Shown: piece by piece, positions 7,491-31,537 of the stretch | How the letters are laid out: every line of letters begins with the position of its first letter | How positions within the stretch are numbered: position 1 is the stretch's first letter | IMG/VR virus record: IMGVR_UViG_3300005289_000016 | Location: 1-64,000 of that record | DNA: 64,000 nucleotides | Strand: one strand, 5' to 3' | Made by a program: the position numbers and the translations under genes | Notes under the pieces: generated by a model | Told to the model about the DNA's origin: nothing | Seen by the model: the letters and a program-made list of their open reading frames with translations, nothing else | The model's database searches: none

Positions 7491-7598
7491 CGAAAATTCT
7501 CCAAATTGGCTTATTATACTAAGCCTCCTTCATACCAACTGTCGAAATGACTCCGAAAATTACGGGAAGCCTTTATGACCACTGAAGCAAGGAGTCTA

Positions 7599-9272
7599 AT
7601 GTCTGACTCTGGCTCGGGCATTAGATACGCCCAGACTCCCGCCAAGGTCTGGCCTATGGTGCTGACTCGGGAACGGGTCGCCCGCATGACTCCGGTCACC
7701 AGTCTCGACATCTATGACGGGGCCAGTGCCGAGTTCCACGACCAAGGTCTGTATTCGACCACCATCTTTGGCCGGGTGGGTTCTGATGAACGAGACGGCA
7801 ACTTCTCTTACATCGATTTGAAGGTCCAAGTCTTCCATCCGAAGATCTTCCGTGACCTCATGAGCCTCAAGTCCATCTACCGTGCTATTGTGTCCGGTCG
7901 TGAGACGGCTATCTTTGACCCGGTGGCCAAGGACTTCATCGCTGACAGTTCTGAGAAGGCCGAAACCGGCTACAGCTTCTTCGTGAAGCACTTCCCACAA
8001 CTGGAACTGCGTAACACCTCCAAGTCACCGACCCGTCGGATCAAGGTGGAGTTCATCCAGAAGTGGCGTGAGTTCGCCTTGACCCGATACATCCCGGTCC
8101 TGCCCGCAGGTATCCGTGACATCGAAGTCGATGACAACGGCGTGACGACCAAGAACGAGATCCACGACCTGTACTACCGTGCACTGTCGATCTCCAACAC
8201 GATTCCCGTGACCAGCAACATGGAATCGCCGGCGCTGAACATTGCCCGGAACGCATTGACCAACTGCCTCTCTGAGATCTATGACCTCATTGAAGGCATG
8301 CTGGCAGGCAAGAACGGTTTCATCCTGGACAAGTGGGCTTCTCGTAAAGTGGTCTACGGTACACGGAACGTGTTGACGGTGATGGATACGTCCATTGCCA
8401 ACCTCAACGACAGTAACGCCCCAGGCTTTGACAGCACGACCCTCGGTCTGTTCCAAGTCATCAAAGGTCTGACCCCGTTGACCATCCACCACCTGCGTCG
8501 TACCTTCGGGCACCTGATTCAGAGCGGCGAAGGTCAAGCGCAGTTGATCGATCCGAAGACCCTGCGTCCTACGTGGGTGGCTTTGAGCCCGGACACCCGT
8601 GACCAATGGTCGACCCGAGACGGTCTGACCAGCGTGATCGACAAGTATCAAATGGTGGAGATGCGTACGCGTCCTGTGGAGATCGAAGGTCATTACTTGG
8701 CCCTCATCTACAAAGGCCCTGACAACACGTTCAAGGTGTTCTTTGACATCCATGAGATGCCTGCTCACCTGAACCGTGATCACGTCTCTCCGATCAACCT
8801 GGTCGAGCTGCTGTACCTCTGTGGTTACCAGTACTGGAACCGCTACTACGCGCAGATCTGTCGTTACCCGATTTCCGGCTTGGGTTCCATCTACCCATCC
8901 CGCGTTTATGTCAAGACCACTGTGGTCGGTGAACGCCGTGTGGAACTGGATGATAACTGGCAGCCGTTCGATGATGCCGAACATGTGGCGCAGGAGTTCC
9001 CTAAAACGGGTTCGACTTCCTTTATGGACACTCAGTCCCCACACTCGACCAAATTGGTTGGGTTGGCAGCGGACTTCGATGGTGACACTGGCTCAGCAAC
9101 ACTGGTAATGTCTCAAGAGGCTCTGGTTGAGAATGACCGTATCCTCAGGTCACGTAACCACTGGATCGATGCAGGGGGTAACCTTACATCCTCCTACGAC
9201 TACGACACCATCAAGTACGTCGTAACCAACCTGACAGGACGATTCAAACATGGCCGTAATGTTTCTGTATGA
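7599..9272 (+). CDS. Virion RNA polymerase beta' subunit with catalytic motif (phiKZ gp180-like)
   Basis: Contains AADFDGD, GLYSTTIFGRVG and RYP. Start placed at ATG 7599 after AAGGAG; the ORF track start is 7575. Confidence 0.9.
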   Translation: MSDSGSGIRYAQTPAKVWPMVLTRERVARMTPVTSLDIYDGASAEFHDQGLYSTTIFGRVGSDERDGNFSYIDLKVQVFHPKIFRDLMSLKSIYRAIVSGRETAIFDPVAKDFIADSSEKAETGYSFFVKHFPQLELRNTSKSPTRRIKVEFIQKWREFALTRYIPVLPAGIRDIEVDDNGVTTKNEIHDLYYRALSISNTIPVTSNMESPALNIARNALTNCLSEIYDLIEGMLAGKNGFILDKWASRKVVYGTRNVLTVMDTSIANLNDSNAPGFDSTTLGLFQVIKGLTPLTIHHLRRTFGHLIQSGEGQAQLIDPKTLRPTWVALSPDTRDQWSTRDGLTSVIDKYQMVEMRTRPVEIEGHYLALIYKGPDNTFKVFFDIHEMPAHLNRDHVSPINLVELLYLCGYQYWNRYYAQICRYPISGLGSIYPSRVYVKTTVVGERRVELDDNWQPFDDAEHVAQEFPKTGSTSFMDTQSPHSTKLVGLAADFDGDTGSATLVMSQEALVENDRILRSRNHWIDAGGNLTSSYDYDTIKYVVTNLTGRFKHGRNVSV

Positions 9273-12200
9273 CCGCTACATGAAACTGTTCGGCATCCGC
9301 AGGCTGGGTGAGTTGGAGAATCCACGAGTACGACCAATCGCACGATTCGGTTTGCCTCGTGGGTCCAACGTCCACTACATGCCTGTGAATGAAACCGAAC
9401 TGGGTCCGGCTGCTTCCAGCCAGATCATTCAGGCAGCGCAACGTCTGGTCTTCATCGACCATGTTCCTGACCTGCTCTCGAAGGAGGGTAACCCCCGCCC
9501 CACGTTCAAGCTCATCGCACCGATGATGCAGCAGTACCGTCGCGAGAACATGACCATCCGCCCAATGCGGGATTATGAAGCAGCGGCAAAAGAACCCCTG
9601 AACATGCTCGTAGTCAACTACGCCATGGTCGCGCAGATGTACAAGTACCAACGGTCGGCTCTGAGTCGCTGGTGGAACTGGCGTAACCTCAGGACCACTC
9701 AGTGGGAACGCTTCAACCAGCTCAAGACTGAACACGAGCGCCATCACATCATCCTGTTTGATGTGCCTCAGACTCTGCCTTCATTGTCTGATCTGCGTAA
9801 AGCTGAACGGGGCATGACTCCGACGCTGATGCAGGTGTTCAACAGTCGTGAGCGTCTGGATTTGCTCGACCTGTTTATCTGGTTGGGTGAGAACCGCCAG
9901 CGCACGCCGATGGGTCGTCTGGATGAGAACCGTCTGAGTGAGATCGAGCTGGTTATCCGTAAGGACACTGGTTGGATCAGCCTGAACCTCGGCCTGCTCA
10001 ACGGCTGGCGTAAGGCTGTCACTGGTGTGTCGATGGAATCGTTCGTCGAACAACCAGTGAGTGAGGACTTCGATTTCGAGGATACCTACCAGCGTTATGT
10101 TTCCATGGAAGCGGCAGGGGATGACACCCTTGATCCTGACATGGGCGTGTCGATGGAAGCTGGGCAAGGTCTCGATCCTAAGATCATGCAGGTGCGGTTC
10201 CTGAAGTTGCTCACCAAGGTCATTGACCAGACCAACCCAGTGCAAGTGATCTCTGCTCAAGAAGTCGAAGCCCAGCAACAAGTCAGGGCTGACGACGATG
10301 CAGAAGAGAAAGCTGAAGAGCAACAGCAGCAACAGCAATCGCTGAAAGAGAACGGTGCTGAAGATCTGCTCGTTGAAGAAGAGGAAGAACTGGCTGAGTC
10401 CTTGGACGCTCCAGCTACCTCCAGCAACGACGCAGAACTGACCGACGAAGACGGCGAGCTGATCGTTGAGACCGGTAACCAGCCTACCACTGAACCGATT
10501 TCACAGATCGTGGCTGATGGCGCTACCGAACACACCCTGACCAGTTCGATCCAGAACAAGATTGACGAGTTGGTGGAGAAGGACGTCCTGACGGCTGCGC
10601 AGTATCGCCGCATGCAGCGTTTGGCTGAATCGTACAAGACGATGCCAGACCCGTGGGACAAGACCAAGACTGTCGAGACCTCCTTGGAGATCAAGCAGGA
10701 AGATCTGGTCCTTCAGGAATCTGAACCGTATCCAGAAATGGAATCGGTGCGTGACAAATCGATGTTGCAGTCTACCGTCGAGAAGATGGACAGTCAGTAC
10801 ATCGAGAAGGTCATGAAGAGTGACATCTTGAACGCCGTTATGTCCGTGCAGAAAGCAGGCATTGCTGTAACGGGGTACGAGATCGAAACCGTGCAAGATG
10901 CGGTCAGTCACTACGAGATCCACAAGGTCCAACTGACTCCAGTCACCGGCAAACCTTCGACCATCTCGTTCCGTGTGCCGGTGGTTGACAAGCGGGGGTC
11001 GTACACCTCCAACGGTCAGAAGTATCGCATGCGGACTCAGAAAGCTGACGTGCCGATCCGTAAGGTCTCGCCAATCCGCGTTGCCCTGACATCGTACTAC
11101 AGCAAGCTGTTCATCGAGCGCTCGCAGCGTGCTGTGTTCAACTACGACAACTGGATCGCCAAGCAGATCATCGCTAAAGGCATGGATCTGGCTGACACCT
11201 CCATCACCAACGTGAAGATCGCTAACGTAGCGAACTTTGAACTCGACCTGCCGACAGTCTACACGATCATCGGTACCCGAGTGATGAGCTTCGAGGCTAA
11301 CGGCCATTACTGGTTCGACTACAAGAACCGGGAGCGCAGTCGCCTGTTCGACATGAAGCTGGTGGAATCCCTTGAAGCTGAACACAAGGGAATGATCGTC
11401 GTAGGTCGTCGTGCTCAACGTTACATCATGGTGGATCGTGAGAACGCGTTCTATTTGATCGACAACAAGAACGGCCAAGTCAGTGAGTTGGGTCAGATCG
11501 AAGACATCCTTGGTTTGAACAAGGACAAGTCGCCGGTCTCCATGGCCGAGATCAGTATCTTCGGCAAGACCATGCCTGTCGGTATCGCCTTGGCGTACTT
11601 GGTAGGTTTGGATAACCTGCTGACCATGACCGGTGTCAAGTTCCGTGCTGTGCCTCTGGGTACACGGGTGCAGATGTCGGACGATGAGTACGCGATCAAG
11701 TTCCTCGATGAAACCTTGGTCATGGACAAGTCGGATGTGAAGAACAGCATGATCTTTGCTGGCTTCCTCCACTACCATAAAGCGATCCGTCAGTTCTCGC
11801 GTCACAGTTTCAACGGCAAGGACGTGTACTTCAACATCCTTGAAGCCAACGGCATCGGTTTGCGCTACCTGCGTGAACTCGACCTCATGAATGCCATGTG
11901 GGTCGACCCGATCACCAAAGGCGTCCTGGAATGGATGAAAGAGCCAACGGAATTCATCCCACTGTTGCAACGTGCGGTGGAAATGTTGGTAACTCGCCAT
12001 GTGCCCAATAAGGTTGAGGGTGCTGATGGGTTGGTGGAAGGTCAAGAACGTGCGAAGGGCTACGAACGTATCCCAGGCGCTATCTACGCCGAGATGGTCC
12101 GGTCTATCCGGGTCTACAACTCGCGTCAAGGTGGTCCGACCTCGCAAGTGACCATGAAGCCTCACGAAGTCTGGACCAACATCGTACAAGACCCGGCCTC

Positions 12201-13641
12201 GGCGATTGTCGATGACATCAACCCGATCCAAAACCTCAAGCAGAAAGAGATCATCACTTACGGTGGCCGTGGTGGCCGCAGTGGGCGGTCGATGACTGCT
12301 GAGGCGCGTCTGTATAAGGAATCCGACATCGGGTTCATCTCGGAATCCACCGTGGACTCCGGGGACGTGGCGGTCATTACCTACATGTCTCCAAACGCGA
12401 ACATCACCAGTGTGCGCGGTACGGTGCGGGCTTACGATAAAGAGAAGGACGGTGCAGCTAACATCGTATCGACCTCCGCCCTGATCAGTCCGTTTGCAGA
12501 CCGAGACGACCCTAAGCGGGTGAACTTCATTGGTATCCAGCAATCTCACGTAATCTCCGCTGACGGTTATCGTGAGTCTCCAATCTCCACCGGCTATGAC
12601 CACGTGTTGGCCCACCGTGTTGATGAGATCTTTGCTGTCCCGGCTACCAAAGCGGGTGAAGTCATTGAACGCACTGACAACCACATTGTGATTGCGTACG
12701 AAGACGGTACCTTCGAGCATCTGGATCTGACCACCCAGTACGGCATCTCCGCTGGTTCGGTCTACCCGCAGAAGCAAGACTCCACCTTCCAGTTGGGTGA
12801 CAAAGTCAAGCCAGGCGACATCTTGAAATTCAACTCGGGCTTCTTTAAGCCGAGCCGGTTCGAACCACGTCAAGTGCAGTGGAAGGCTGGGGTGATTGCG
12901 CGTACGGCTCTGATGGAAGCGTCCTACACGCTGGAAGACTCCTCGGCAATCGATGATTGGTTGGCGGGTCAGCTGGGTTCGGAAGTCACCAAAGTCAAGA
13001 CCATCGTCGTGCAATTCGGGCAGCACCTGCGTAACCTGGTAAAACCGGGCGACCACACGGACATCTCGAGTATTCTATGCACGATTGAAGATGCTGTAAC
13101 GGCGGAAGCTGGACTGTTCTCGGACGAAGACCTTGAAACCCTTCGCAAGATGGGCTCGGCGGCACCACTGGCTGGTGCGGTTGGCGAAGTCTCGAAGATC
13201 GAGGTGTTCTACCACGGTGACCCGGACGACATGTCGGACTCGCTGTTGGAGCTGGTTACTGCCCACGACAAAGAACGTCGTAAGGTGGCCAAACGTCTCG
13301 GCAAACCGGTTGTCACAGGTCAGGTCGACCAATCCCTTCGTATCGACGGGAACGGTCTGGAACTCGATCACGTTGCGATCAAAGTCTACATCACTCACCG
13401 TGAAGGCATGGGTGTCGGTGACAAGGCAGTGTTCTGTAACCAGATGAAGACAGTAGTTGGTCATCGCTTGAGCGGTGTCAATGAAACCAAGTCGGGTTCT
13501 CGGATCAATGCCGTCTTCGGCGCCAAGTCGGTAATGGACCGGATTGTATCCTCGGCCCTGCTGATTGGCATGTCCATCTCTGTCCAACGCGCCATCGGCG
13601 AGAAGGCAGCAGAGATGTGGATGAGCAACGATACCAAGTAG
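9250..13641 (+). CDS. Virion RNA polymerase beta subunit (phiKZ gp178-like)
   Basis: 1463 aa with beta-subunit motifs DDPKRVNFIGIQQSH, EDSSAI and GVGDKAVFCNQMK; overlaps the beta' gene. Confidence 0.9.
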   Translation: MAVMFLYDRYMKLFGIRRLGELENPRVRPIARFGLPRGSNVHYMPVNETELGPAASSQIIQAAQRLVFIDHVPDLLSKEGNPRPTFKLIAPMMQQYRRENMTIRPMRDYEAAAKEPLNMLVVNYAMVAQMYKYQRSALSRWWNWRNLRTTQWERFNQLKTEHERHHIILFDVPQTLPSLSDLRKAERGMTPTLMQVFNSRERLDLLDLFIWLGENRQRTPMGRLDENRLSEIELVIRKDTGWISLNLGLLNGWRKAVTGVSMESFVEQPVSEDFDFEDTYQRYVSMEAAGDDTLDPDMGVSMEAGQGLDPKIMQVRFLKLLTKVIDQTNPVQVISAQEVEAQQQVRADDDAEEKAEEQQQQQQSLKENGAEDLLVEEEEELAESLDAPATSSNDAELTDEDGELIVETGNQPTTEPISQIVADGATEHTLTSSIQNKIDELVEKDVLTAAQYRRMQRLAESYKTMPDPWDKTKTVETSLEIKQEDLVLQESEPYPEMESVRDKSMLQSTVEKMDSQYIEKVMKSDILNAVMSVQKAGIAVTGYEIETVQDAVSHYEIHKVQLTPVTGKPSTISFRVPVVDKRGSYTSNGQKYRMRTQKADVPIRKVSPIRVALTSYYSKLFIERSQRAVFNYDNWIAKQIIAKGMDLADTSITNVKIANVANFELDLPTVYTIIGTRVMSFEANGHYWFDYKNRERSRLFDMKLVESLEAEHKGMIVVGRRAQRYIMVDRENAFYLIDNKNGQVSELGQIEDILGLNKDKSPVSMAEISIFGKTMPVGIALAYLVGLDNLLTMTGVKFRAVPLGTRVQMSDDEYAIKFLDETLVMDKSDVKNSMIFAGFLHYHKAIRQFSRHSFNGKDVYFNILEANGIGLRYLRELDLMNAMWVDPITKGVLEWMKEPTEFIPLLQRAVEMLVTRHVPNKVEGADGLVEGQERAKGYERIPGAIYAEMVRSIRVYNSRQGGPTSQVTMKPHEVWTNIVQDPASAIVDDINPIQNLKQKEIITYGGRGGRSGRSMTAEARLYKESDIGFISESTVDSGDVAVITYMSPNANITSVRGTVRAYDKEKDGAANIVSTSALISPFADRDDPKRVNFIGIQQSHVISADGYRESPISTGYDHVLAHRVDEIFAVPATKAGEVIERTDNHIVIAYEDGTFEHLDLTTQYGISAGSVYPQKQDSTFQLGDKVKPGDILKFNSGFFKPSRFEPRQVQWKAGVIARTALMEASYTLEDSSAIDDWLAGQLGSEVTKVKTIVVQFGQHLRNLVKPGDHTDISSILCTIEDAVTAEAGLFSDEDLETLRKMGSAAPLAGAVGEVSKIEVFYHGDPDDMSDSLLELVTAHDKERRKVAKRLGKPVVTGQVDQSLRIDGNGLELDHVAIKVYITHREGMGVGDKAVFCNQMKTVVGHRLSGVNETKSGSRINAVFGAKSVMDRIVSSALLIGMSISVQRAIGEKAAEMWMSNDTK

Positions 13642-15297: not shown

Positions 15298-16029
15298 ATG
15301 AGTATCAAATCGAGTAAGTTCACCCGAGACGCAGCCCGTGTCCACAAAGCCTGGGAGAAGACCGCCGATGGTGCAATGGTGGCGCTCAAGCCGTTGAAGG
15401 TGTACATTCCCTCTCGGTTCCCTCAGCGCGATCTGGCCACGTTCGAAGATGAGATCACGTTCGTTGGTATCTGTGCAGTTGTGCTGGACGATCAGTACTA
15501 CATGGCGTCCCGTATCTGCGCACCCATCCGTTCCGAACCCACGCTAGTGAACACCGCCGTCATCGACGATGTCGAGTACATCGAAATGCACTATGAACCC
15601 GGTGATCGGGTGATCGTGACTGATGAACTGGTGATGATCGACAACCTGCTTTATCGGATCTACGACGAGATCATTGCAAAGGGACGCGTGCCTTGGTACG
15701 TCCTTTACCCTGAACTCGGTGGGATCTTCCAAACCTCGCTGAAACATGCGGGCGTTCGGGTAGGTAAGACCCCGACGGTGATGGAAATCATTGCCAGCGT
15801 TATCTGCCGTGATACTGGCGACCTGCGTCGCTACTATCGTCAAATGGTAGAAACCTACGAAGACATCCGGTATACACCGCCGACCATCATCCCGCTTCGT
15901 AACGTGAGTTACGGTGCGACCAACACCATCGCAAAGTTAACCGGTTCCCGCTTCGACGAAGGCATGACCTCCGCCATCGTCAACCCTGGCGATCGCGTAG
16001 AGCGGACCGAGATGGTACTCCGAACGTAA
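15298..16029 (+). CDS. phiKZ gp176-like protein, probable vRNAP beta' C-terminal subunit
   Basis: 243 aa. C-terminal PLRNVSYGATNTIAKLTGSRFDEG resembles the beta' clamp C-terminus; directly upstream of the protease. Confidence 0.65.
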   Translation: MSIKSSKFTRDAARVHKAWEKTADGAMVALKPLKVYIPSRFPQRDLATFEDEITFVGICAVVLDDQYYMASRICAPIRSEPTLVNTAVIDDVEYIEMHYEPGDRVIVTDELVMIDNLLYRIYDEIIAKGRVPWYVLYPELGGIFQTSLKHAGVRVGKTPTVMEIIASVICRDTGDLRRYYRQMVETYEDIRYTPPTIIPLRNVSYGATNTIAKLTGSRFDEGMTSAIVNPGDRVERTEMVLRT

Positions 16030-16039
16030 GGATTCCGCC

Positions 16040-16840
16040 ATGGATCAAAGAATCATTTATCAATGTAACGTGTTGAAGGGCATCAATAAGGTTGGGGACC
16101 TGAAGAAGCTCGACAACGGTTACTACGAAGTGCGCCTTGGTGCACTCGGTGCGTACAACGAAGCTGGTTGGCTCTACAATGAGCGCGAAGGTCGTCAACT
16201 GATGGAAGGCTCTGCCGGCCTGATGCGGATGATCAACCAGAACAACGCCCTGCGTGGCGAGAACGGTCACCCGCGCTTCCAAGCCGGTATGAACCAGCTC
16301 CAGTGGTTCGGTCGTGTGAACGATATCTTCGAACCTAACGTCTGCTTCCACATGCGTCGTCTGATGCTCGATCCTGCCAAGGACGAACGTGGTCGCAGCA
16401 TCTCCATGGTGCTCGGTGAAGTCCGTGCATCGGGTAAAGAGAGCGCTTGGTTTGACCGTCAGTTGGAGAACCGTGACGAAAACGTCTGCTTCTCCATCCG
16501 GTCATTTACCGAAGACAAGATCGTCGGTGGCGTCAAGACCAAGTTCCTGAAGAAGATCGTGACGTGGGACACTGTGAACGAGCCGGGCATCCGTAACTCG
16601 TCCAAGTACGCCACGCCGTCGCTGGAATCGGCTCCTGAAGCTGGCAGCGGCTTGATCGCCCTGCCTGAAGCTGAACTGGAAACCGTCTTCTACGCCGATG
16701 CCCTGCGTAAAGAAGCCATGGCCAACCCAGTTGGTGTTGGTGCAGGCGTGGGCTTTGAGTCCGGCGCGAACATGATGTCGCTCATTGCTGAAATCGAACG
16801 ACCAATCAAGGTCTACGTGCCCAGCTCCTGGAGGTGGTAA
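16040..16840 (+). CDS. Prohead protease (phiKZ gp175-like)
   Basis: LRGENGHP, NVCFH, CFSIRS and WDTVNEPGI motifs; C-terminal S-L-E and G-F-E candidate autocleavage sites. Confidence 0.85.
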   Translation: MDQRIIYQCNVLKGINKVGDLKKLDNGYYEVRLGALGAYNEAGWLYNEREGRQLMEGSAGLMRMINQNNALRGENGHPRFQAGMNQLQWFGRVNDIFEPNVCFHMRRLMLDPAKDERGRSISMVLGEVRASGKESAWFDRQLENRDENVCFSIRSFTEDKIVGGVKTKFLKKIVTWDTVNEPGIRNSSKYATPSLESAPEAGSGLIALPEAELETVFYADALRKEAMANPVGVGAGVGFESGANMMSLIAEIERPIKVYVPSSWRW

Positions 16841-18133
16841 ATGCAAGACACCATCAACGAAGCGTTGGTGGGGGCTGTTGAGCGGATGGAGTCAGAAGCA
16901 TCTCTGGCTCCAGCGCTTTCGGTTATTTCCGACATGGCAGACGTTGCCGACAGTCGCATGGTGCTTGAGCAATGCGTAGAGCAGCTCACCATGGCAGACG
17001 GCTCGGTGGTGGATGTCTTGGAGGCTGAACAGTCCTACTTGGACTGGCGTGCTACTCACCACGATGTGGTCCGTGGCCGTGCTCAGACTGGCGATGCGCT
17101 GGTTGATGAGATTCGTGTCACCATGGAAATGCTGAACAACCCCTCCATGGAATCCGATTTGGTGCAACAGCTCAAGCGCACCTTTGGTTCCATGACGCTG
17201 ACCCTGAAGACCTTTGGTAAGGATCTGATCGACATCAAGTCGAAGATCAGCCAGAACAAGGACACCATTGCAGCTTCGCCTGTCTTGCTCGATTCGGCAG
17301 CGGCTTACGCATTCTTGACCCGGGACAACAAACCGGTCAAGTTGGTAGGTTCGATTGACGAGGACCTCAAGTTCATCGACGCAGCGATGGCGCACTATCA
17401 GCGTCTGTTCAACACGTCCACTGACCTGTCCAAGCGTTTCCGTGAAGCGTGCAGTCAGGACGATGACGGTGCAATCCGGGAAGCTGTCGACTATTTCGAC
17501 GAGCACCTGATTGACCGCACTGAGTTCGAAGACCTGACAGGTTTCCATCTGCTGGGCAATCGTACCGTTTACTTGGACAAACGTGGCTTCCCACAGTTCA
17601 AGAAAGACGGCAGTCCTTGGAAGTTCACCAACAAGGACACTGACGAGAATGGTCTCAAAACCAAACTCGCCAAGAAACAGATCCATGGCTTCACCATTGG
17701 CGGGCCTTTGAAGGCAGTCACCGGTGTGGTCGGTATGAACGACGTTGCTGCTAAGCGGCAAGTGTTGGCCCAAGTCAAGTCGACTGGCGGTGAGACGGAT
17801 GTGAGTGGCTTCCTTGGTGTGGTTGACAAGGCGATCAACCTCAACAATCAGACCGTCAAGTTTGCACAGATGGCGGCAACCATGTCCGAGCGTATTGAAC
17901 GCTTGATGGGCGACATGGACGATTCGTACCGTTTCGTGAATACCGAGAAATCCGTCGACGATAACGTCGTCCGATTGAGGACTCTGCGTGCCCTTTACCG
18001 CTCGGCTCGCCGTAGCGTGTCGCAGTACATGTTCCTGGGCAAAGCCATCGCTACGGTGATGGAGGACCATGCGTCCTACGTGTACCGCAACATCACCATC
18101 ATCTCCAACGAAGTCCTCAAGAAATCCAAGTAA
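16841..18133 (+). CDS. Putative internal head protein with an acidic propeptide
   Basis: Acidic N-terminal ~100 aa ending PSME; abuts the protease stop codon. Confidence 0.55.
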   Translation: MQDTINEALVGAVERMESEASLAPALSVISDMADVADSRMVLEQCVEQLTMADGSVVDVLEAEQSYLDWRATHHDVVRGRAQTGDALVDEIRVTMEMLNNPSMESDLVQQLKRTFGSMTLTLKTFGKDLIDIKSKISQNKDTIAASPVLLDSAAAYAFLTRDNKPVKLVGSIDEDLKFIDAAMAHYQRLFNTSTDLSKRFREACSQDDDGAIREAVDYFDEHLIDRTEFEDLTGFHLLGNRTVYLDKRGFPQFKKDGSPWKFTNKDTDENGLKTKLAKKQIHGFTIGGPLKAVTGVVGMNDVAAKRQVLAQVKSTGGETDVSGFLGVVDKAINLNNQTVKFAQMAATMSERIERLMGDMDDSYRFVNTEKSVDDNVVRLRTLRALYRSARRSVSQYMFLGKAIATVMEDHASYVYRNITIISNEVLKKSK

Positions 18134-18143
18134 GGAAAGTCCC

Positions 18144-19394
18144 ATGAAGAACTCGGTTCTTACCGCTGCCCTGAAAGTGTCTCAGGAAAGCGCCGAAGAC
18201 GGCGAAGCGTTGCTGGATCAGCTGCGCAGTGAAAGCACCCCGGTCAACGCCGACAACTACGTCGAAGACCGTCTGGAAATCGAACAGGACATGTCGACCC
18301 TGGAAGAAACCGTCGTTCAGCTCGAAGGTGGCGATGAAACCGTCAGCCAAGAAGCCCTGGACAGCGCTGCTCAACTGGTTTCGGCTGTCATGGGTCGCTA
18401 CGGCATTACCGTCAACACCGCGTCGCTGGAATCGGCTGACAACAGCGGCCGTGCCAAAGAACTGGCTACCCAGATCCGTGGCATCAATGCTTCCCTGGAA
18501 GGTCACCTGACCGTCGCAATGGAAAGCTACTCCATTACCGACCTGTGGGACAAGATCGGCCTGCTGAACCGTGAAGTCCCAGACCTGAAGGACAACGTCG
18601 CTGTCCTGAAGAACTACGCGTCCCAGAATGCCAAGTTGGCCATCACTCCAGCCTTCGGTCGTTCGCTGATCTACGCCTTCCGCGTCGATGGTTCCGTGCC
18701 GGACAACATTCCGAAAGCTGCCGACGACACTGCGGGCATCATCGGTGATCTGATCAAGTTCGGTACCAAGCTGGTTGACGACAGCAAGAAAGCTGCTGAC
18801 ATCGCCATGCGTGTTGACTGGAAAGATCAGGATGCTGCTGATAAAGCCATCAGCCAAATCAACGGTATCAACCCAGGTATCAACGAAGTGTACCGTCGTT
18901 TCGACGAAACCTTCACCATGGGTAACCGTCGTCTGAACGTGAAGAAGTTCGACATCAAGAACGCACCTCAAGGCCTGGGCAACTGGTCCACTGGTGGCTC
19001 GCTGAACGTGAGCTGGCCGAAAGCTGCCCTGCTGGACTTCGTCTTCGACCCAAGCGTCGTGACGGTGGTTCAGGGCGGTCGTAAGCGTGTCGTCAAGGTA
19101 GAAGAGCTGATCGGCGCTCTGGACAAGTTCCTGGCTGCTGCAACCGCTACCCAGCAAATGCGTTCCAACTCGCCGAAGAAGTGGACCGAGCACAAGCAGC
19201 TGGCAGTGCGCATGAAGAAAGACGTGTCGGGTTCTGCTGATGCTAAAGGCGTACAACGCGCTATCATCGAGACCTCCCGTCTGGGCTGGCAGTGCCTGAA
19301 CGGCGCTGTGACTGTTCTGTACTACATCATCCGTGAGATCAACCTCGCGGCTGAGCGCGTTGCTAAAGACGCGAAGAAGAACAACCGTTCGTAA
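18144..19394 (+). CDS. Putative internal head/ejection protein with multiple S/A-x-E sites
   Basis: AAGGA RBS; SQE, SQE, SLE, SLE and AME sites in an acidic N-terminal region; strong codon bias. Confidence 0.65.
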   Translation: MKNSVLTAALKVSQESAEDGEALLDQLRSESTPVNADNYVEDRLEIEQDMSTLEETVVQLEGGDETVSQEALDSAAQLVSAVMGRYGITVNTASLESADNSGRAKELATQIRGINASLEGHLTVAMESYSITDLWDKIGLLNREVPDLKDNVAVLKNYASQNAKLAITPAFGRSLIYAFRVDGSVPDNIPKAADDTAGIIGDLIKFGTKLVDDSKKAADIAMRVDWKDQDAADKAISQINGINPGINEVYRRFDETFTMGNRRLNVKKFDIKNAPQGLGNWSTGGSLNVSWPKAALLDFVFDPSVVTVVQGGRKRVVKVEELIGALDKFLAAATATQQMRSNSPKKWTEHKQLAVRMKKDVSGSADAKGVQRAIIETSRLGWQCLNGAVTVLYYIIREINLAAERVAKDAKKNNRS

Positions 19395-24544: not shown

Positions 24545-25411
24545 TTACAGCTTGATGTAAGTGCGGTTGAAGTCCGCTACCTGCTCGGTGAAACCAACGT
24601 TGTGTTTGGCAACATCGGCTTCCACGCCCGTCGCGAACGACGGCTTCAGGTTTGGAGAGGTACCGGTCTTCGGCATCGCGTCCAGCAGTTGCTGAGCGAA
24701 ACGGTCGACTGCGACACCTACCTGCTGCATGCCGGTCCAAGGGATCGACAGCACCAGCTCTTCACCATCAGCCGTCTTGTCACGGCGGCCAGTGAAATCA
24801 CCGGCAGTGGTTGGGTACATGTTGGTCATCAGCCATGCCGAGTTGACCTTGGTGAAGGACGGGTCCGGCTCGAAAGCAATGATGCTCATCGAGTAGATGT
24901 CCGGCAGCAAGTCGGTAGGCTTGTTGACACGGGTGGAGATCCCAGGCACCTTCGAGTCAGGGTCCATGATCAGCTCGGTGATCCAGCTCTCGAAGAAGCG
25001 CTGAACTGGACGGCCGTACTTCTCACGGATGGTCATCGATGGGTCGGAACGCTGACGCGTCACGTTGCTTGGGGTCTGTTGCATTTCGCCAGCACCCGAC
25101 ACCGGAGCTTCGACGCTGTTCACAGTCAGGGTACGGTTGAAGCCGTCCCAGGTCTGTGCGTGCATCTCAACAATGCCTTTGAGGGCCTTGTAGTAGCTGT
25201 CCGGGTTGTCCAGGTATTGGAAACCACGTGGCGCTTGCAGAACCTTGATGATCAGGTTGCGGCGCACGTAGTCGGTGTTGGCGTGGAAGTAACGGAGGTC
25301 AGACTGGTAGGCGTTCTGCCCACCAATCGCCAGGTTGACCATCGGCGAGTTGTTGAACTCGCCGTAGCCCAAGCCGTTACCGAGCAGGGTGTCGCGATGA
25401 CGGACGGTCAT
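24545..25411 (-). CDS. Tail tube protein (phiKZ gp30-like)
   Basis: 288 aa directly downstream of the sheath with a 1 nt overlap; EKYGRPVQRFFESWI and AWLMTNMYP. Confidence 0.8.
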   Translation of the reverse strand: MTVRHRDTLLGNGLGYGEFNNSPMVNLAIGGQNAYQSDLRYFHANTDYVRRNLIIKVLQAPRGFQYLDNPDSYYKALKGIVEMHAQTWDGFNRTLTVNSVEAPVSGAGEMQQTPSNVTRQRSDPSMTIREKYGRPVQRFFESWITELIMDPDSKVPGISTRVNKPTDLLPDIYSMSIIAFEPDPSFTKVNSAWLMTNMYPTTAGDFTGRRDKTADGEELVLSIPWTGMQQVGVAVDRFAQQLLDAMPKTGTSPNLKPSFATGVEADVAKHNVGFTEQVADFNRTYIKL

Positions 25412-27468
25412 TACTCAGTCTCCGTACCAGGACGACGGCCAGCAACAACGGTCAGAACCTCAACCGTCTTCATGCCGTCGAAAAGACCTTCGATGTCCGT
25501 GTGCCAGCTGTAGCCGCGCTGGGTGTCAGCCGCGGTGTAGTAGGAACTCGGGGTGATGTCCGCACGACCGTCGTAGCGATCCTTGATCTCTTCTTCGATG
25601 AAGCGGTCCACGTTCGTGGCGTATTCAGCAGCAGTCATGCGGCTGTCACCAGTGAACATGCGCCAGGCCAACTCACCGATACGGTTGAGGTGGCAGCAGA
25701 TCGCCATCGGGAAGAACGAGTTGAGGACCGACGTGTTGTCGTGGTAGACGGTCTGGATACCAGGGAAGAACACTTGACCGCGGTGGTCGAAGGGCTCTGC
25801 CGAGCTGATACCAGCTTGCCAGTCGGTGTTGCGTGGCTTGACCGGACGGAACTTGGCGTTGTGGTCGACGAAGCGAGTCACAATGCGGCCAGCCTGGCCA
25901 TCAGGCGCGTAGCCTGCTTTCATGCGAGCGCCACCCATGTAGGTAGCGACCTTCACCGCGAAGTCCACAGTGAACGGCAGGATGCCGTCGTACTCGGAAT
26001 CGAGGTAGGTACCAGCGTGCTTCATTACGATAGCACGGCAGGCGCCGGTGTTGTAGAACTCGGATTCAGGAACCAAGCTCAGCGCGTTACGCAGGGTAGC
26101 GCCGATGCTCGAATCTTCTTCCGGAGTGTTCAACGGCTCCAGGACGTCCTGAGTGGAAGCCAGTACCCATGCGTCGGGACGCACGGCCATGACGTTCGAC
26201 ATCAGACGCTTGGTCGGCAGGGTGTAACCGGTGTCGATGAAGCTCGACATCGGGAAGCTGGCACGGTCAGCGTAAGGCACATCGCCTTCACCGAACACGT
26301 TCAGCTCGCCGTTCACCGCTTCGTCGTAAGACTCAGGGGTCACGGTACCGTCTTCACCGCCTTGCAGCCAGTGAGTAGCGGTCTCGCCGAACAGCACACC
26401 ACCGGCCGATGGACCTTCGATCTTCACAGCGTAATAAGGCACGCCGTTGACGTTGGTACCGCCGAACAGGTTGATCGAGTGCTCTGGAGTGACTTCGCTT
26501 TCGATCAGACCGAAGTCTTTCTCGACGGCGTAGATCGCGTCCAGGACGGTTTTCAGGTGAGCGTTGTAGACGTAGAACGTCTTCAGCGGACCATAACCGG
26601 AGAACACTTCAGGGTCGTTGTTCTCGAACGCCTTCAGCACGCGCTTGTCGTAGCTGTAGTTCAGGTTGGACTTCGGATCGACCACACCTTGCTTGAGGGA
26701 GAACTCGACGAACGGGTTGCCGTCCAGGTTCATGCGGACTTGGCCGGTGCTGTTCACACTGGCACGTTCCAGGATCGACAGGCGGTACACGTACGCACCT
26801 TGGCTTTCGATCAGCTCGGCGTTAGCCGGAGTCGACGAAGCGGTAGTCGGAGCAACCAGACGCAGACCGAAGTTGGAACCCTTGGCACCGTCGAAACGGG
26901 CTTCCACGTCCATCAGCGGATACATGGTCGATGGCTTGCCATCCCAGTTGGTCATGGTGCCAGTGGTAGGCGATGCTTTACGCACGCCGTCTTCACCGTC
27001 GATCTTCTCGACAACGAAGCGCAGGCGAACACCTTCAACCGGCTCACCAGTAATGACCAGCGCGCCATTGGTACGTTTGAAGGTACCGTCTGGATTACGC
27101 TCGTATTGATCGATCTTGTCATCGACCATGTCAACCCAGATACGCAGGTTGGCAGTTGCAGCGCCGATCGCTTTCAGACGACGAACCAGAGCCATTGCAC
27201 CGGTCTGCATGACCTTCTGCAACATGGCGCCTTGGTGGCTCAGGAATGCCGAACCAGCGTAGAAGTTGTCGGCACCGTAGATGGTGCTGAAGCCAGCTCC
27301 GCTCACCAGCATAGCGGTGTCAGAGGGACCCCAAGATGTGAACAGCGGGGTCCACGGCAGAAAGATCGGCAGATCGACGATCTCCAGCGGTTGACCCTGA
27401 CCGCTCACATCTTTAAAACCAAGAACTTCCGTTCTCGGCAAAGACGAAGCCATCGAAACAGACGACAT
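25411..27468 (-). CDS. Contractile tail sheath protein (phiKZ gp29-like)
   Basis: About 685 aa; WLQGGEDG, FIDTGY, FFPGIQTVY..TSVLN and YYTAAD..RGYSW; start chosen after GGAGA. Confidence 0.85.
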   Translation of the reverse strand: MSSVSMASSLPRTEVLGFKDVSGQGQPLEIVDLPIFLPWTPLFTSWGPSDTAMLVSGAGFSTIYGADNFYAGSAFLSHQGAMLQKVMQTGAMALVRRLKAIGAATANLRIWVDMVDDKIDQYERNPDGTFKRTNGALVITGEPVEGVRLRFVVEKIDGEDGVRKASPTTGTMTNWDGKPSTMYPLMDVEARFDGAKGSNFGLRLVAPTTASSTPANAELIESQGAYVYRLSILERASVNSTGQVRMNLDGNPFVEFSLKQGVVDPKSNLNYSYDKRVLKAFENNDPEVFSGYGPLKTFYVYNAHLKTVLDAIYAVEKDFGLIESEVTPEHSINLFGGTNVNGVPYYAVKIEGPSAGGVLFGETATHWLQGGEDGTVTPESYDEAVNGELNVFGEGDVPYADRASFPMSSFIDTGYTLPTKRLMSNVMAVRPDAWVLASTQDVLEPLNTPEEDSSIGATLRNALSLVPESEFYNTGACRAIVMKHAGTYLDSEYDGILPFTVDFAVKVATYMGGARMKAGYAPDGQAGRIVTRFVDHNAKFRPVKPRNTDWQAGISSAEPFDHRGQVFFPGIQTVYHDNTSVLNSFFPMAICCHLNRIGELAWRMFTGDSRMTAAEYATNVDRFIEEEIKDRYDGRADITPSSYYTAADTQRGYSWHTDIEGLFDGMKTVEVLTVVAGRRPGTETE

Positions 27469-27634
27469 GTTCATGTCTCCCATGGGAAAGAATTTCAACT
27501 TCGCGCGTGAAGTTACGAATGGTATGGCCCTTGCCTACATTTAAAAACCGTAGGATTCGGTACTCGATGTATTCGATACCATCACCACATACTATTTTGT
27601 TATTTTTTACTGGTTGCGACAGAAGAGGTCGAAG

Positions 27635-28945
27635 ATGATCACCAGCCCCTGGAACTCCACCGTGCTTCGCCAACACAGAACTGGCGAAATTATCAGCGAA
27701 CTCGCCGTGGCAAAAGCCATGGGTGGGTTGGTCGCTGACGGTCCCGCTGTTGTTCTGGTTACCCCGGCAGCTGAGAAGATTGACACCTTCATTCTGCCGA
27801 TCACATCCGAAGAATACGGCAGCCGTAAGCTCAACGAAAACGGTGTCGTGTTTATGGACGGTCGTTCGTTCATGCGCAAGGAACAGCGCTCGGCTACAGG
27901 CTTTATTGTCGCCAACCAAACCCAAGCAGACTTTGTGGTCCGTCTGGGAGAGCTGACCGCGTTGTGGGTTAAAGACCTTTCTGTACGTGATGACTTCCTG
28001 CGGGTGGGCGATTTGGCTCCCCAGACTTTCATCGCATGGATCGCTGGACTCATCACAGGGCAGCTCGGCGTAGACGAAGTAGCCTCGCGCGAGATTCAGA
28101 TCATTACGGGACTTTTTTACATCCATCAGTTTTATGGCGCAGATGTAGCGCTGTCGACTCATGGTAAAGAGACCGCGATGAAACTGATCCAGCGTTGGAC
28201 TCGCGCTCCGATTCAATTGATTCAAGGGATCGTGGCAGTGGCTGAATACATGCCGTTGCTGGAAAACTACGTGGCTGAAGTGCGCAAGCAATTCGCTTCC
28301 AACACCCGCATCATCCGTATCAACGTGGGTTTCATTACCATGTCCTTGGGTCGTTCGTGGTTTGGCTGGGGTGCGCAAGAACTTTGCGGCGTAGCGCTCG
28401 AATACCCGCCTGCTTTCTTGGCTCTGGTAGAAGCTGCGTCGAACACCAAGGTATGGCGTAAGAACCACCTCGGTGGTCTCGTCCAGCGCTTGGCTGTTAA
28501 TGAAGCAGGCATGCAGGCGTTCGGCAAGTCCATGGAGATCCTGGCTGGTAAAGTCCGTCAGATGTCCGTGTCCATGGAATCGTTCGAAGCAGGTGCTCCG
28601 GCAATCCAAGCCGACATCGACAAAGCCCAGAAAGACTTGGGCGTGAAGTTCGCTCCAGACTACATCGTCTTCCTCAAGAAGTTCGGTGTGCTGAGCGTTG
28701 GCAGTCACGAGATCTACGGTCTCGGTCCTAAAGCTGGCCACCTCAATGTGGTTGCCGGTACTCAGGAAATCGCCAAGTACTTCAAGACCAAAGGCCTGTA
28801 CGTGATCGAAAGCGTGGGCGTGGATTCGGTGTTCATTGCAGCCGACTCCAAGGGCAACCTGTACGAGGTAAGCCCGGCTGGCGAAACGCCAATGAAGACC
28901 ACCTTCAGCAAGTACCTGGATGAAGTCATCGCAGGTAATGACTGA
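27635..28945 (+). CDS. phiKZ gp28-like virion protein with a C-terminal SUKH (SMI1/KNR4)-like domain
   Basis: Divergent from the sheath and upstream of the gp27/26/25-like genes. The last ~120 aa begin after VSME and contain IDKAQKDLGVKFAPDYIVFLKKFG. Confidence 0.7.
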   Translation: MITSPWNSTVLRQHRTGEIISELAVAKAMGGLVADGPAVVLVTPAAEKIDTFILPITSEEYGSRKLNENGVVFMDGRSFMRKEQRSATGFIVANQTQADFVVRLGELTALWVKDLSVRDDFLRVGDLAPQTFIAWIAGLITGQLGVDEVASREIQIITGLFYIHQFYGADVALSTHGKETAMKLIQRWTRAPIQLIQGIVAVAEYMPLLENYVAEVRKQFASNTRIIRINVGFITMSLGRSWFGWGAQELCGVALEYPPAFLALVEAASNTKVWRKNHLGGLVQRLAVNEAGMQAFGKSMEILAGKVRQMSVSMESFEAGAPAIQADIDKAQKDLGVKFAPDYIVFLKKFGVLSVGSHEIYGLGPKAGHLNVVAGTQEIAKYFKTKGLYVIESVGVDSVFIAADSKGNLYEVSPAGETPMKTTFSKYLDEVIAGND

Positions 28946-28966: not shown

Positions 28967-31537
28967 ATGACCTCCGATGATTTTCTGATCAACCATGCGT
29001 ACAAGAACGTGTGGTGTGCGCCGGAGCAGGACCGGCAGCACATCTTGCGTCCTGCACGCATCAGCCCTAAAGTCGGGGCTCGGGGAAGTGTTGAGGTGCT
29101 GTGGACGCGCTTTAACCTCCCAACCGCCAAAGAACGCTACCACGTGTTCCAATTCGGTAACATCGCCCTGAGCAATCTGGACCTTGACCTGAAGCGGAAT
29201 ACCTGGACAGCCGTCAGCAGCCAGATGGTTGACTCCGTCTTGCTGATCGACATCTACACCGAGAAGGGTCTGATGGTCCCTCGGCGTCTGGCGTACTTCC
29301 TTTATACGAACGACGGCAACCTCGTGATCGCCATCGAGAACCTGCTCACCATCGGTGATTTCGGTCAAGAGAACGTCTACGTTCGGTTCTACAGCAACGC
29401 CTTCTTCGATCGGGACGACATGAACGATCCGAACGAGGGCATCGAGTACCACTTCGCTAATCCACTGACCGGCTCGCAGATCAACGCCTTGACGTTCAAG
29501 CTGCGGGACCTGCGACTGAAGTCGGGCTATTGCTTTGCTTTCGTCAATGGCTGGCGTGTCAACGAACTCAACGTGAGCACCGTCGCTAAAGGCGACTTGG
29601 TCGAGATCGTACGTGACAGTTCGGTGGTGCGGGTCGAGGAATGGGACGTTAAGGACCTTCCGGTGTTCTTGTCGGAACTGGACCAGAAACAGAAGTACCT
29701 CCTGCACCCCGCGGTGAATGAGGACGACTTGATCTGGTACCGGGATGACCAAGAGATCTTCTTGATGTATAAGAAGACCCCGTACGTGCACAAGGGCGTC
29801 TACTACCACAAGAACGTCGAGGACTCGGTGCGCATGGTGACTCACCGTGACTATTCGATCCCGACAGCTCAAGTGGACCGCTTCCTCAACCAGAACCCTA
29901 ATTGGGCAGTGAATAATCAACTCACGGTGCAGATGTTCATTCGTCGCTCCGGGATTGACCGTTCCCTGATGAGCGAGGCCCATCACATCAAAGAGCTGTA
30001 CAAGCTTGAAGGTGCTGCTTGGCAAGCAGCCGTGATGGGTACTGAGGCCGTGGTGGACGTGTGGCGGATTGAGGAACTGGAGAAATCCCAGTACACCGCT
30101 TTGATGCGTGCACCTTCAGCGACCATCACTCGTCAAATGGTGGAAGCCGCTTACGGCTACAACACCATCACCCGGATCGTGGCGGATACGCCGCAGAAGA
30201 TCGCGACACCCAAGGCTTGGACGGAGTTGCCGTTCGGTCTGCGTGGTGAAAGCACGGTGTACGAGTACGATGTAGCTGGACGCCTGCTGGGCTGGTATCT
30301 CAACCAGAATGTGCAGAACTACGTGCCACGGTCTGCGGCAACGCGGTACATCGAAGGCATTGTGGGACGTGGCACTGATGTCCTGACCACGGTCTACGCC
30401 AAGAACGCCAAGATCAAAGCTGGTCTGGCGTATCGCTGCTACGTCTGCCCGATCGAGAACGCGCTGCCCACTGGCGAATGGATCGATGTCACCGACAAGA
30501 CCACGCATTACGACCTCATTGATGGGGAAGTGGTGTGGAAGGTCAACCCGCAGATGTTCTACACCGCGGTGAAGTTCGACGACTCCTTCCTGACGTACAA
30601 CCTTGAGTTGGACTACGCCGATGGATTGCTACGTTTCAGTCTGAACGTGAAGGAGATCCGGATTGACGGTGTTCTTTACGAAGGCTTGGTGGAAATCCCA
30701 GCGGGGCTGCTGGAGATCTGGTTGAACGGCTGTCCGTTGATCGAAGGTCTTGACTGGTTCATGGTCGGTAAAGAGATCGTGATCGTCAACAAGCAGTACC
30801 GCAACCAAGTGGACACGAAGAACATCATCACCATCCGTCACACTGGCTTCTGCACCCCGGACATGAAACGGGTCAAGGAGTCGGAGTACGGGTTCGTGGA
30901 GAATGGTCTGCTGTCTCGTAACAACCGCTGGAACCTGCGTGATGACAAAGTGGTCCGTGTCATTGCTGATGGTCGGATCTGGAGCCGGGAAGAATTGAGC
31001 TGGGCAGAAGACCGCCCAGGAGTAATTCTGGAAAACGTGCGTAATGGCGCGCCATATCAGGTTACTGAACCCTTGATTCCGCTGCGGGGCCTGACGTATC
31101 AGGACGCGTACGACATGCGTGAAGTGGCCGAGGCTACTGACAAGCAGATCGAAGACTACATGACTGTGAAGGTGGGTGAGGTGCCTCCACAAGAGGTCAA
31201 CCTTATCCCGCATCGCCACACGCTGTACAGTCCATTCGTGGGCAAGCTGATGCATGATCTGATCAGCGGGTACTTCGACCAGATTCCTCTGACCGAGTAC
31301 TACAGTGACGTGGATGTGCGCAAGTGGTGTGAAGGATACGTGTGGTTGCTCAAGTACGAGCCGACCTCCAAAGGCTTTGATGAGCGTTACGTGAGCATCA
31401 GTGCCCATGAGCGTAATGAAGTCTTCCGTCTCCCGATCTACCAGTACAACTTCTTGGCTCGTGCGATCCGTGTGATGCTTGACGACAAAATCGACATCAC
31501 CAACGCCATCGTCATTGACCACCTGCCCATCGATTAA
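28967..31537 (+). CDS. Virion baseplate/tail protein (phiKZ gp27-like)
   Basis: 856 aa beginning FLINHAYKNVWCAPEQDRQ; assignment by synteny. Confidence 0.7.
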   Translation: MTSDDFLINHAYKNVWCAPEQDRQHILRPARISPKVGARGSVEVLWTRFNLPTAKERYHVFQFGNIALSNLDLDLKRNTWTAVSSQMVDSVLLIDIYTEKGLMVPRRLAYFLYTNDGNLVIAIENLLTIGDFGQENVYVRFYSNAFFDRDDMNDPNEGIEYHFANPLTGSQINALTFKLRDLRLKSGYCFAFVNGWRVNELNVSTVAKGDLVEIVRDSSVVRVEEWDVKDLPVFLSELDQKQKYLLHPAVNEDDLIWYRDDQEIFLMYKKTPYVHKGVYYHKNVEDSVRMVTHRDYSIPTAQVDRFLNQNPNWAVNNQLTVQMFIRRSGIDRSLMSEAHHIKELYKLEGAAWQAAVMGTEAVVDVWRIEELEKSQYTALMRAPSATITRQMVEAAYGYNTITRIVADTPQKIATPKAWTELPFGLRGESTVYEYDVAGRLLGWYLNQNVQNYVPRSAATRYIEGIVGRGTDVLTTVYAKNAKIKAGLAYRCYVCPIENALPTGEWIDVTDKTTHYDLIDGEVVWKVNPQMFYTAVKFDDSFLTYNLELDYADGLLRFSLNVKEIRIDGVLYEGLVEIPAGLLEIWLNGCPLIEGLDWFMVGKEIVIVNKQYRNQVDTKNIITIRHTGFCTPDMKRVKESEYGFVENGLLSRNNRWNLRDDKVVRVIADGRIWSREELSWAEDRPGVILENVRNGAPYQVTEPLIPLRGLTYQDAYDMREVAEATDKQIEDYMTVKVGEVPPQEVNLIPHRHTLYSPFVGKLMHDLISGYFDQIPLTEYYSDVDVRKWCEGYVWLLKYEPTSKGFDERYVSISAHERNEVFRLPIYQYNFLARAIRVMLDDKIDITNAIVIDHLPID

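Follow-up and report, generated by a model that had tools for sequence, protein, structure and literature searches.

A gp28-family vertex protein of a jumbo phage carries a C-terminal SUKH domain behind a putative prohead-protease site: a candidate carrier of exchangeable head payloads

Why would a protein of the inner capsid wall of a jumbo phage end in a domain related to bacterial immunity proteins? The question is raised by a gene at positions 27635..28945 (+ strand) of a 64,000-nucleotide (nt) stretch of the IMG/VR virus record IMGVR_UViG_3300005289_000016 (positions 1 to 64,000; hereafter the window). The gene is a single open frame of 436 codons, from an ATG at 27635 to a TGA at 28943-28945 with no internal stop, and direct reading of the sequence places a Shine-Dalgarno-like GAAGAGG (27622..27628, +) 6 nt 5' of the ATG. 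Its 47.6-kDa product has two Pfam domains, a gp28-like vertex-binding domain and a SUKH domain. A preliminary description had read this product as carrier, cleavage site and cargo in one chain, with a virion protein taking an antitoxin-like domain into the head. The peptide strings quoted there were all found in the product of 27635-28945, and the S-M-E that it placed at 28571-28579 is exactly amino acids (aa) 313-315. We propose that the gene encodes a gp28-family inner-capsid vertex protein that may double as a payload carrier; judged from the sequence, the proposed chain of events as a whole, up to delivery, stands evenly balanced between right and wrong.

The carrier domain (aa 1-305; 27635..28549, +) is mostly helical and 61% identical to the corresponding protein of Pseudomonas phage pPa_SNUABM_DT01 (hereafter DT01). 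Pfam family PF25614 (PhiKZ_VTX) matched aa 1-302 with E 1.5e-61, and a search of Protein Data Bank (PDB) sequences found the structure of phiKZ gp28 (8y6v chain D) with E 2e-14. An AlphaFold2 model of the window protein was built on 21 homologues and its fold matches were obtained by Foldseek; the helical N domain superposes on 8y6v_D (Foldseek E 1.3e-9, template-modelling (TM) score 0.76). Sequence and fold thus both indicate homology of the carrier to phiKZ gp28, as does the gene neighbourhood. In phiKZ, gp28 is found at the vertices, on the inside of the capsid wall, where it bridges adjacent members of the five vertex-binding complexes per vertex (PMC11297242), and its gene is essential at 37 C, one of only three such minor capsid genes. 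Because phiKZ gp28 lines the inner wall, a C-terminal extension would sit inside the head, in up to ~55 copies.

The extension is a SUKH_5 domain (aa 323-436; 28601..28942, +), as the preliminary description had supposed from a signature in the letters. In the full protein, PF14567 matched aa 323-405 with E 4e-10 and 40.0 bits (cut-off 27). When the last 121 aa were searched alone, the profile check that had been suggested for this piece, SUKH_5 scored 43.5 bits (E 3.5e-11; gathering cut-off 27), SUKH_6 also passed its cut-off (30.3 bits against 27), and SMI1_KNR4 fell just under (24.7 against 25.4). The AlphaFold2 C domain is alpha+beta with a predicted local distance difference test (pLDDT) score of 88-94 and takes a SUKH fold. 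Its best Foldseek matches were YobK (2prv), Lin2918 (2icg) and BF1740 (3d5p), followed by PSPTO_5518 (2pag) and yeast Knr4, all with probability 1.0; TM scores on target were 0.65-0.68 over the SUKH structures (0.65-0.67 for 2prv, 2icg and 3d5p), and FBXO3 was present with Knr4 among the fold matches. YobK, the best of these, we take to be the immunity protein of the Bacillus subtilis YobL toxin. Bacterial relatives of the cargo are stand-alone SUKH_5 proteins of ~130 aa, or SUKH_5 fused to PoNi immunity domains, LHH nuclease or DUF6985, which is the usual company of polymorphic-toxin immunity modules.

The DT01 orthologue, 311 aa long and 61% identical, ends ...EILAGEARGSNR where the window protein continues ...EILAGKVRQMSVSME/SFE... 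(here and below, a slash within a motif marks the predicted cut). The C-terminal part was covered by 0 of the 174 phage records that hold a gp28 homologue, so that no cultured phage among them has the extension, and the SUKH piece alone gave no tblastn match in phage records. The full-length protein, used as query in a collection of 5.8 billion proteins, found 34 clusters of the clade. Eleven of these combine gp28 with SUKH (436-440 aa, 94-58% identity) and come from compost and other metagenomes (NCBI, JGI, ENA, Logan), where contigs of 258-277 kb are among those that carry them. Another 19, 309-335 aa long, are short forms that, like the DT01 protein, end 3-6 residues past the last gp28 helix, and the remainder are longer variants. 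The best cluster has 11 member sequences, read on 9 contigs. Taken together, at least 14 clusters contain the fusion, and their identity ranges between 94% and 44%. These results bear on two doubts that the preliminary description had itself raised, that SUKH might be part of all gp28 orthologues or that the fusion might be an error. The domain is missing in DT01 and in most of the clade. A lost stop codon or a chimeric assembly joining two genes has the prior in its favour, that metagenome assemblies contain errors, and nothing further: the same fusion recurs in at least 14 clusters across NCBI, JGI, ENA and Logan assemblies and on independent contigs, no read-through stop was seen, the frame is continuous, GC content is flat across the gp28/SUKH junction (0.53-0.56), the codons are under purifying selection, and no split (two-gene) version was found in the search of 5.8 billion proteins. 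The artefact explanation is refuted, its probability being negligible, and the gp28-linker-SUKH architecture and its modularity are next to certain.

Selection on the two parts was compared in four genomes. SUKH codons gave dN/dS of 0.10-0.18 and the gp28 domain 0.10-0.27; the SUKH module is under purifying selection and at least as constrained as the gp28 domain. Free-standing homologues of the cargo reach at most ~40% identity in an exhaustive HMMER search, in which the other matches are fusions, and a word-indexed search of the 5.8 billion proteins with the 121-aa SUKH piece found no close free-standing relative. A recent capture of SUKH from a sequenced host gene was considered and rejected, on the grounds of this distance and of the uniform GC content.

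The two domains are joined by a linker (aa 306-322, KVRQMSVSMESFEAGAP; 28550..28600, +) that is predicted to be disordered, with AlphaFold2 pLDDT below 50 at aa 306-319, between a helix at 290-304 and another at 325-335. In the middle of this low-confidence segment lies V-S-M-E (aa 312-315; 28568..28579, +), a putative prohead-protease site with a predicted cut at E315/S316, indicated by conservation, enrichment and the protease logo. In a 21-member alignment, [V/I/A]-S-x-E occupies one column in 15 of the 15 extended proteins, directly past the ends of the short forms. The junctions of further fusions read FSME/D (P0036) and TSFE/A (P0352), and S-x-E was present at every module boundary examined, including the gp28/SUKH boundary in 14 proteins; the S-x-E of the linker, which the preliminary description had picked out, is thus conserved as well as predicted to be disordered. 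VSME occurs 4 times in the proteins of the window against 0.19 expected (~20-fold), a count that 0 of 500 shuffles reached. The generic motif [SAG]-x-E occurs 255 times against 258 expected and was rejected as evidence on its own, as it shows no enrichment. From the frequency of S.E in the window proteins (0.0042 per residue), a 20-aa linker would hold a chance S-x-E in ~8% of cases, by rough estimate, and it would be very unlikely for all of about eight distinct junctions to have one by chance.

The predicted processing enzyme is encoded in the same window, in line with the gp175-type cleavage that had been invoked: a homologue of the phiKZ gp175 prohead protease (MEROPS S80) lies at 16040..16840 (+), with PF20034 (Peptidase_S80) at E 2.4e-63 and a tblastn match to phiKZ gp175 (32% identity, E 3e-29). 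The SPN3US protease cuts after A-x-E, with V preferred at P4 and S at P1' (PMC10052503), and phiKZ gp86 is cut at SQE-122 (PMC5694885); V-S-M-E/S fits the known site pattern. The sharing of VSME with a virion RNA polymerase (vRNAP) subunit, also claimed earlier, was borne out. A motif scan found three more copies at aa 260-304 (10027..10158, +) of the gp178-like subunit (ORF, or open reading frame, 9250-13641), at a place that matches the propeptide position in 201phi2-1, where cleavage at residue 275 trims the N-terminal propeptide from the vRNAP beta subunit (PMC5694885). This triplet within 45 residues is likely a multi-site propeptide boundary. Because the window contains the protease gene, the linker is predicted to be disordered and S-x-E stands at about eight distinct junctions, cleavage in the linker after E315 is probable, to the extent that sequence can tell.

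Two further ORFs with motifs of this kind lie directly 3' of the protease gene, at 16841-18133 (+; 430 aa) and 18069-19394 (+; 441 aa), and have no Pfam or PHROG match. They carry NPSME/S (aa 102-104) and KVSQE/S or TVSQE/A near the N-terminus, and may encode further protease substrates or ejection proteins.

The preliminary description had also suggested that the C-terminal slot is a swappable cargo position, and comparison within the clade bore this out. Besides SUKH alone and no cargo at all, the slot can hold a different domain or both. Protein P0014 (454 aa, same synteny; L016:5001-6365) consists of gp28, ISME/D and then another domain of ~130 aa that weakly matches DUF6985. P0008 (604 aa) and P0030 (570 aa) run from gp28 through S-x-E to SUKH and on through a second S-x-E (VSLE/SF or VSQE/AF) to a DUF6985-like domain, and P0008 and P0033 have an acidic spacer with extra SFE and SME motifs. 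The DUF6985 matches scored 18.6-23.4 bits, under the Pfam cut-off of 24.5; the domain was modelled as beta-alpha-beta (AlphaFold2 pLDDT 86.5) and gave no PDB fold match with E <0.3. Bacterial DUF6985 fused to SUKH_5 was found in P0078 and P0144. On a maximum-likelihood tree of the gp28 domain, the four cargo states (SUKH, DUF6985-like, both, none) require at least six changes, the minimum possible being three. The window protein is one of 11 SUKH carriers that form a well-supported clade. Support of 98/91 joins P0010, which has SUKH, to its sister P0014, which has the DUF6985-like domain, and P0036, another SUKH carrier, lies far off on the tree together with two short forms. Near-identical backbones also occur with and without cargo: P0352 (438 aa, SUKH of P0009-P0011 type, TSFE/AF) is >90% identical in its gp28 domain to the 311-aa P0015, in the same 90% cluster, which indicates that the module was gained or lost very recently by exchange of the 3' end of the gene.

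The module also occurs outside gp28. P0034 (581 aa; L002:8001-9746) comes from a 247.5-kb contig of a compost metagenome and is homologous to phiKZ gp89. The phiKZ record annotates gp89 as a structural head protein, and in a recent preprint it is described as a high-copy protein of the inner body. P0034 had no sequence match among solved structures and was identified as gp89 type by its synteny with the phiKZ annotation. Inserted in it, between ...TASME/SS and ...ETSME/AN, is a SUKH domain that shares 69% identity with that of the window protein; the DT01 gp89 orthologue has no such insert, yet has TASME at the same position. On the SUKH tree, the copy in gp89 falls within the clade of gp28-borne domains, beside that of the window (support 90/94). 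By these sequence relationships the SUKH module has moved between two head proteins, arriving at protease-type sites both times. The contig that holds gp28-SUKH cluster P0001 has a gp89 homologue without SUKH, and among ~105 gp89 homologues no Pfam-recognised cargo other than that of P0034 was found; length variation in the others is low-complexity K/E/R/A linker. Because the gp28 slot also holds the DUF6985-like domain or both domains, and because SUKH sits in gp89 between S-M-E sites, the apparent unit of selection is the protease-flanked cargo cassette and not a particular carrier.

As an observation on gp89 itself, from a comparison of P0034 with L007:2998-4443 and L019:2001-3395, all gp89 homologues of the clade keep S-[ML]-E sites clustered at aa 140-175; the linker that comes next is rich in K/E/R/A, hypervariable and 40-130 aa long. 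SUKH domains were also seen in two other phage settings: P0192 (572 aa; L012/L013:6001-7719), in a prophage, has two of them and lies between a connector gene and the genes for TerL, portal and an S78 protease, and P0188 (424 aa; L010:8001-9275) has a C-terminal SUKH in a large AT-rich phage. Virion-associated SUKH domains may therefore be more widespread.

These comparisons bear on whether the domain acts where it stands. An uncut SUKH domain on the inner capsid wall might serve as a docking point that binds and positions the DNA-associated core or one of the packaged proteins, be it an ejection protein, the vRNAP or part of the inner body. SUKH is a generic protein-binding module, as Knr4 and FBXO3 among the fold matches illustrate, gp28 is a fixed and essential wall component, and [SAG]-x-E is frequent and mostly uncut in folded proteins. 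However, the domain is missing in the closest relatives with the same capsid gene set, an unrelated DUF6985-like domain can replace it, one phage has it inside the presumably cleaved linker of gp89, and S-x-E is kept at all boundaries, with the linker predicted to be disordered. We consider such tethered docking improbable, though slightly the least so of the three functional alternatives weighed here.

If the domain is instead released as a payload, the following sequence of events is proposed. The protein would join the prohead through its gp28 domain, and the S80 protease would cut after E315 during prohead maturation, leaving gp28 (34.7 kDa) in the vertex-binding complex and freeing SUKH in the head. 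The predicted fragment (aa 316-436) is 12.9 kDa and acidic (pI 5.3), and would be present in up to ~55 copies, 5 per non-portal vertex, given a phiKZ-like stoichiometry. The free domain would stay in the head until the next infection and then leave together with the DNA and the other ejection proteins. Once inside the new cell, it would bind and block a toxin-type effector (a nuclease, RNase or similar) before phage gene expression, the effector coming from the host, a resident element or a neighbouring cell. Prohead entry and cutting are supported by sequence logic. Retention, ejection and toxin blocking are drawn from the phiKZ precedent, the T4 proteins IPI* and Alt, and the roles of bacterial SUKH proteins; on these analogies retention in the head and ejection fall a little short of an even chance, and an antitoxin or anti-defence role of SUKH is more tentative still. 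That the target is an RNase or translation-directed effector would be sensible for a phage with shielded DNA, and is speculation.

Several facts weigh against this release and delivery. The motif [SAG]-x-E occurs ~11 times in the window protein, including a conserved SME at aa 299-301 in the last gp28 helix and SHE in the SUKH core. The cuts mapped in SPN3US are almost all removals of N-terminal propeptides, the sole C-terminal cut being in the protease itself. phiKZ gp28 is absent from the list of cleaved capsid proteins in the structure paper (PMC11297242), and the gp28 homologue of Goslar was not seen in its capsid map, so that the location of gp28 may differ between chimalliviruses. The gp89 insertion is one protein on one contig among the ~105 homologues. 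Selection on SUKH is purifying and not diversifying, unlike the usual fast arms-race interface. Cleaved fragments can also be lost, as the N-terminal pieces of phiKZ gp86 are cleared from heads (PMC5694885), which leads to a further explanation, that the extension is cut and discarded from the head, or acts in the producer cell, with a function, if any, late in the current infection. Propeptide fragments of 201phi2-1 gp148 are cleared from heads in the same way as those of phiKZ gp86, and the S-H-E in the SUKH core would be cuttable if the domain unfolds. Against this explanation, a folded 13-kDa domain (pLDDT ~90) is unlikely to leave a closed shell, and strong purifying selection, with repeated re-acquisition that is always inside head proteins, suggests that a place in the head counts. 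A free gene would be simpler for a cytoplasmic role, yet the 5.8 billion proteins hold no close free-standing relative. Loss or a late role in the producer cell therefore seems to us a poor candidate.

No toxin gene was found adjacent to gp28-SUKH in the window or in related loci, which also speaks against the payload proposal, since the locus then offers neither a toxin-immunity pair nor a hint of what the target is. The same observation bears on the reading that SUKH and the DUF6985-like domain confer immunity to a toxin that the phage packages in its own virion, which these domains would keep harmless, first in the producer cell and then inside the head, up to the moment of ejection. Head-packaged toxins on head proteins are known (MuF polymorphic toxins, PMC3482391; polyvalent proteins, PMC5512222), SUKH normally pairs with a cognate toxin, and purifying selection would fit a fixed partner in the same genome. 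However, no toxin domain stands beside the gene or in the scanned parts of the window, and a phage with gp28-SUKH shows, apart from the module, the same locus as DT01; being a comparison of loci, this is a weak test. A guard for a co-packaged toxin is accordingly judged unlikely, to the same degree as discarding of the fragment. The broader form of the payload proposal is that, in a clade of chimalliviruses, protease-flanked cassettes, plugged into the gp28 C-terminus or the gp89 linker, preload the head with immunity-type domains from bacterial polymorphic-toxin systems. We hold this to be possible, with the doubt outweighing the expectation. If it is true, SUKH and the DUF6985-like domain would act as injected antitoxins and at time zero would counter either toxin-effector defences or toxins of interbacterial or phage origin that reach the cell. 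DUF6985 would then represent a novel family with an immunity or anti-defence role, and the phage would have a layer of protection that its nucleus cannot give, for example against RNase or translation-targeting effectors.

Ready-made head proteins that are injected against host defences have a precedent in T4. There, IPI* and Alt have a capsid-targeting sequence that is cut by gp21 and are injected, and IPI* blocks GmrSD restriction. As in the scheme proposed here, a counter-defence protein is made in advance and loaded into the head, where the prohead protease processes it, and it reaches the next cell along with the DNA. Unlike in T4, where a short N-terminal peptide is removed, the targeting part here is a whole structural protein that stays in the shell, and the protease families (S77 in T4, S80 here) are only distantly related.

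Closer precedents come from phiKZ, and for these the part of the preliminary description that thought the design undescribed is out of date. Its carrier-site-cargo interpretation is supported in part, and well so in architecture, modularity and protease logic. In phiKZ gp93 and gp162, the gp175 cut splits off a C-terminal domain, destined for the inner body, and leaves the N-terminal part bound to the capsid (PMC11297242), and gp93 and gp184/Tad1 are described as having N-termini wedged in the capsid and C-termini that the head protease releases for injection (bioRxiv 10.1101/2025.11.23.690004; PMC11297242). Pfam found no family in phiKZ gp184, the Tad1 assignment being that of bioRxiv 10.1101/2025.11.23.690004 only; the same source gives gp184/Tad1 as the only anti-defence protein previously known in phiKZ. 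The systems are alike in phage family and, as proposed here, in location at the vertex-binding complex or inner wall and in the order of anchor, S/A/G-x-E cut and released C-terminal domain. The gp184 cargo is an anti-defence protein delivered from the capsid wall. They differ in the carrier, which here is gp28, essential in phiKZ and with no cleavage reported there, and in the cargo, which is an immunity-type SUKH domain and not a Tad1 sponge or inner-body domain. The cargo here is, moreover, optional, exchangeable and in some relatives concatenated (SUKH plus DUF6985-like), and the system is described here from its sequence. The principle of an anchored, cut and injected cargo, even an anti-defence one, is thus already known in phiKZ; what is new is SUKH as immunity-type cargo, the DUF6985-like cargo, their concatenation, a cargo that moves between the head proteins gp28 and gp89, and the use of a vertex protein that is essential as its carrier.

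Polyvalent proteins and MuF toxins (PMC5512222; PMC3482391) resemble the present proteins in having conflict-related domains on head-associated proteins in late or virion gene contexts, with variable domain arrays and predicted processing and injection. They differ in carrying enzymes, toxins and anti-restriction domains, often with a peptidase domain of their own, whereas the module here is an immunity-type binder and the cut would come in trans from the head maturation protease. By Pfam the window protein has one cargo domain and no peptidase domain; P0008 and P0030 have two cargo domains (SUKH and the sub-cut-off DUF6985-like). With the bacterial SUKH immunity proteins (B. subtilis YobK, 2prv; SUKH_5) the module shares fold and family signature. 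Unlike those ~130-aa stand-alone proteins or multi-immunity arrays with PoNi and DUF6985, it has no adjacent toxin gene, is fused to a virion protein and is at most ~40% identical to its free homologues. SUKH has 0 occurrences in the text of the polyvalent-protein paper (PMC5512222) and none in a jumbo-phage comparative genomics paper, and whole-word and SMI1/KNR4 text searches found no description of a virion-borne SUKH; neither gp28 as a carrier nor multi-cargo arrays came up in the literature searched.

The nucleus of jumbo phages, once formed, shields them from DNA-targeting defences, but they stay exposed in the first minutes of infection and to effectors directed at RNA, translation or membranes. 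For such phages the results suggest that the capsid-wall route is a general, evolvable payload slot and that payloads have been drawn from the immunity proteins of bacterial toxin systems, with the DUF6985-like domain likely a second payload type. The modules would also give a handle on the host toxins that limit these phages, and the arrangement of anchor, V-S-x-E/S and cargo a natural design rule for loading jumbo-phage heads.

The remaining gene content of the window places it among nucleus-forming jumbo phages. It encodes a chimallin homologue (56577-58487, +), a divergent family-B polymerase (51908-54199, +), vRNAP subunits homologous to phiKZ gp178 (9250-13641, +) and gp180 (7575-9272), a gp176 homologue (15298-16029, +) and the S80 protease; because of these genes we assign the phage to the Chimalliviridae, related to Pseudomonas phage DT01. 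The latter was the nearest among 50,697 GenBank phage records (about half of a 24-kb query matched it, at ~81% nucleotide identity), and megablast of the gp28-SUKH gene itself against those records gave no match. The gene is flanked by a divergent tail sheath gene (25411..27498, -; annotated in DT01 as 'putative tail sheath protein', with PF20961 phiKZ_gp29PR in syntenic loci) and, directly 3', by a DUF7193 gene (28967..31537, +; PF23823, E 2e-290) that is the same neighbour in DT01 and in all loci fetched. The order tail sheath, gp28, DUF7193 is identical in DT01, and the same neighbours were seen in every related locus inspected. A 2112-aa protein with an SLT transglycosylase domain is encoded at 1149-7490 (-). 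Two long ORFs overlap this neighbourhood on the opposite strand of real genes: one of 442 aa (27413-28741, -) is antisense to gp28-SUKH in DNA of ~55% GC and was treated as spurious, and one of 669 aa (25501-27510, +) is likewise antisense to a real gene; long antisense ORFs of this kind are typical at this GC content and are not genes.

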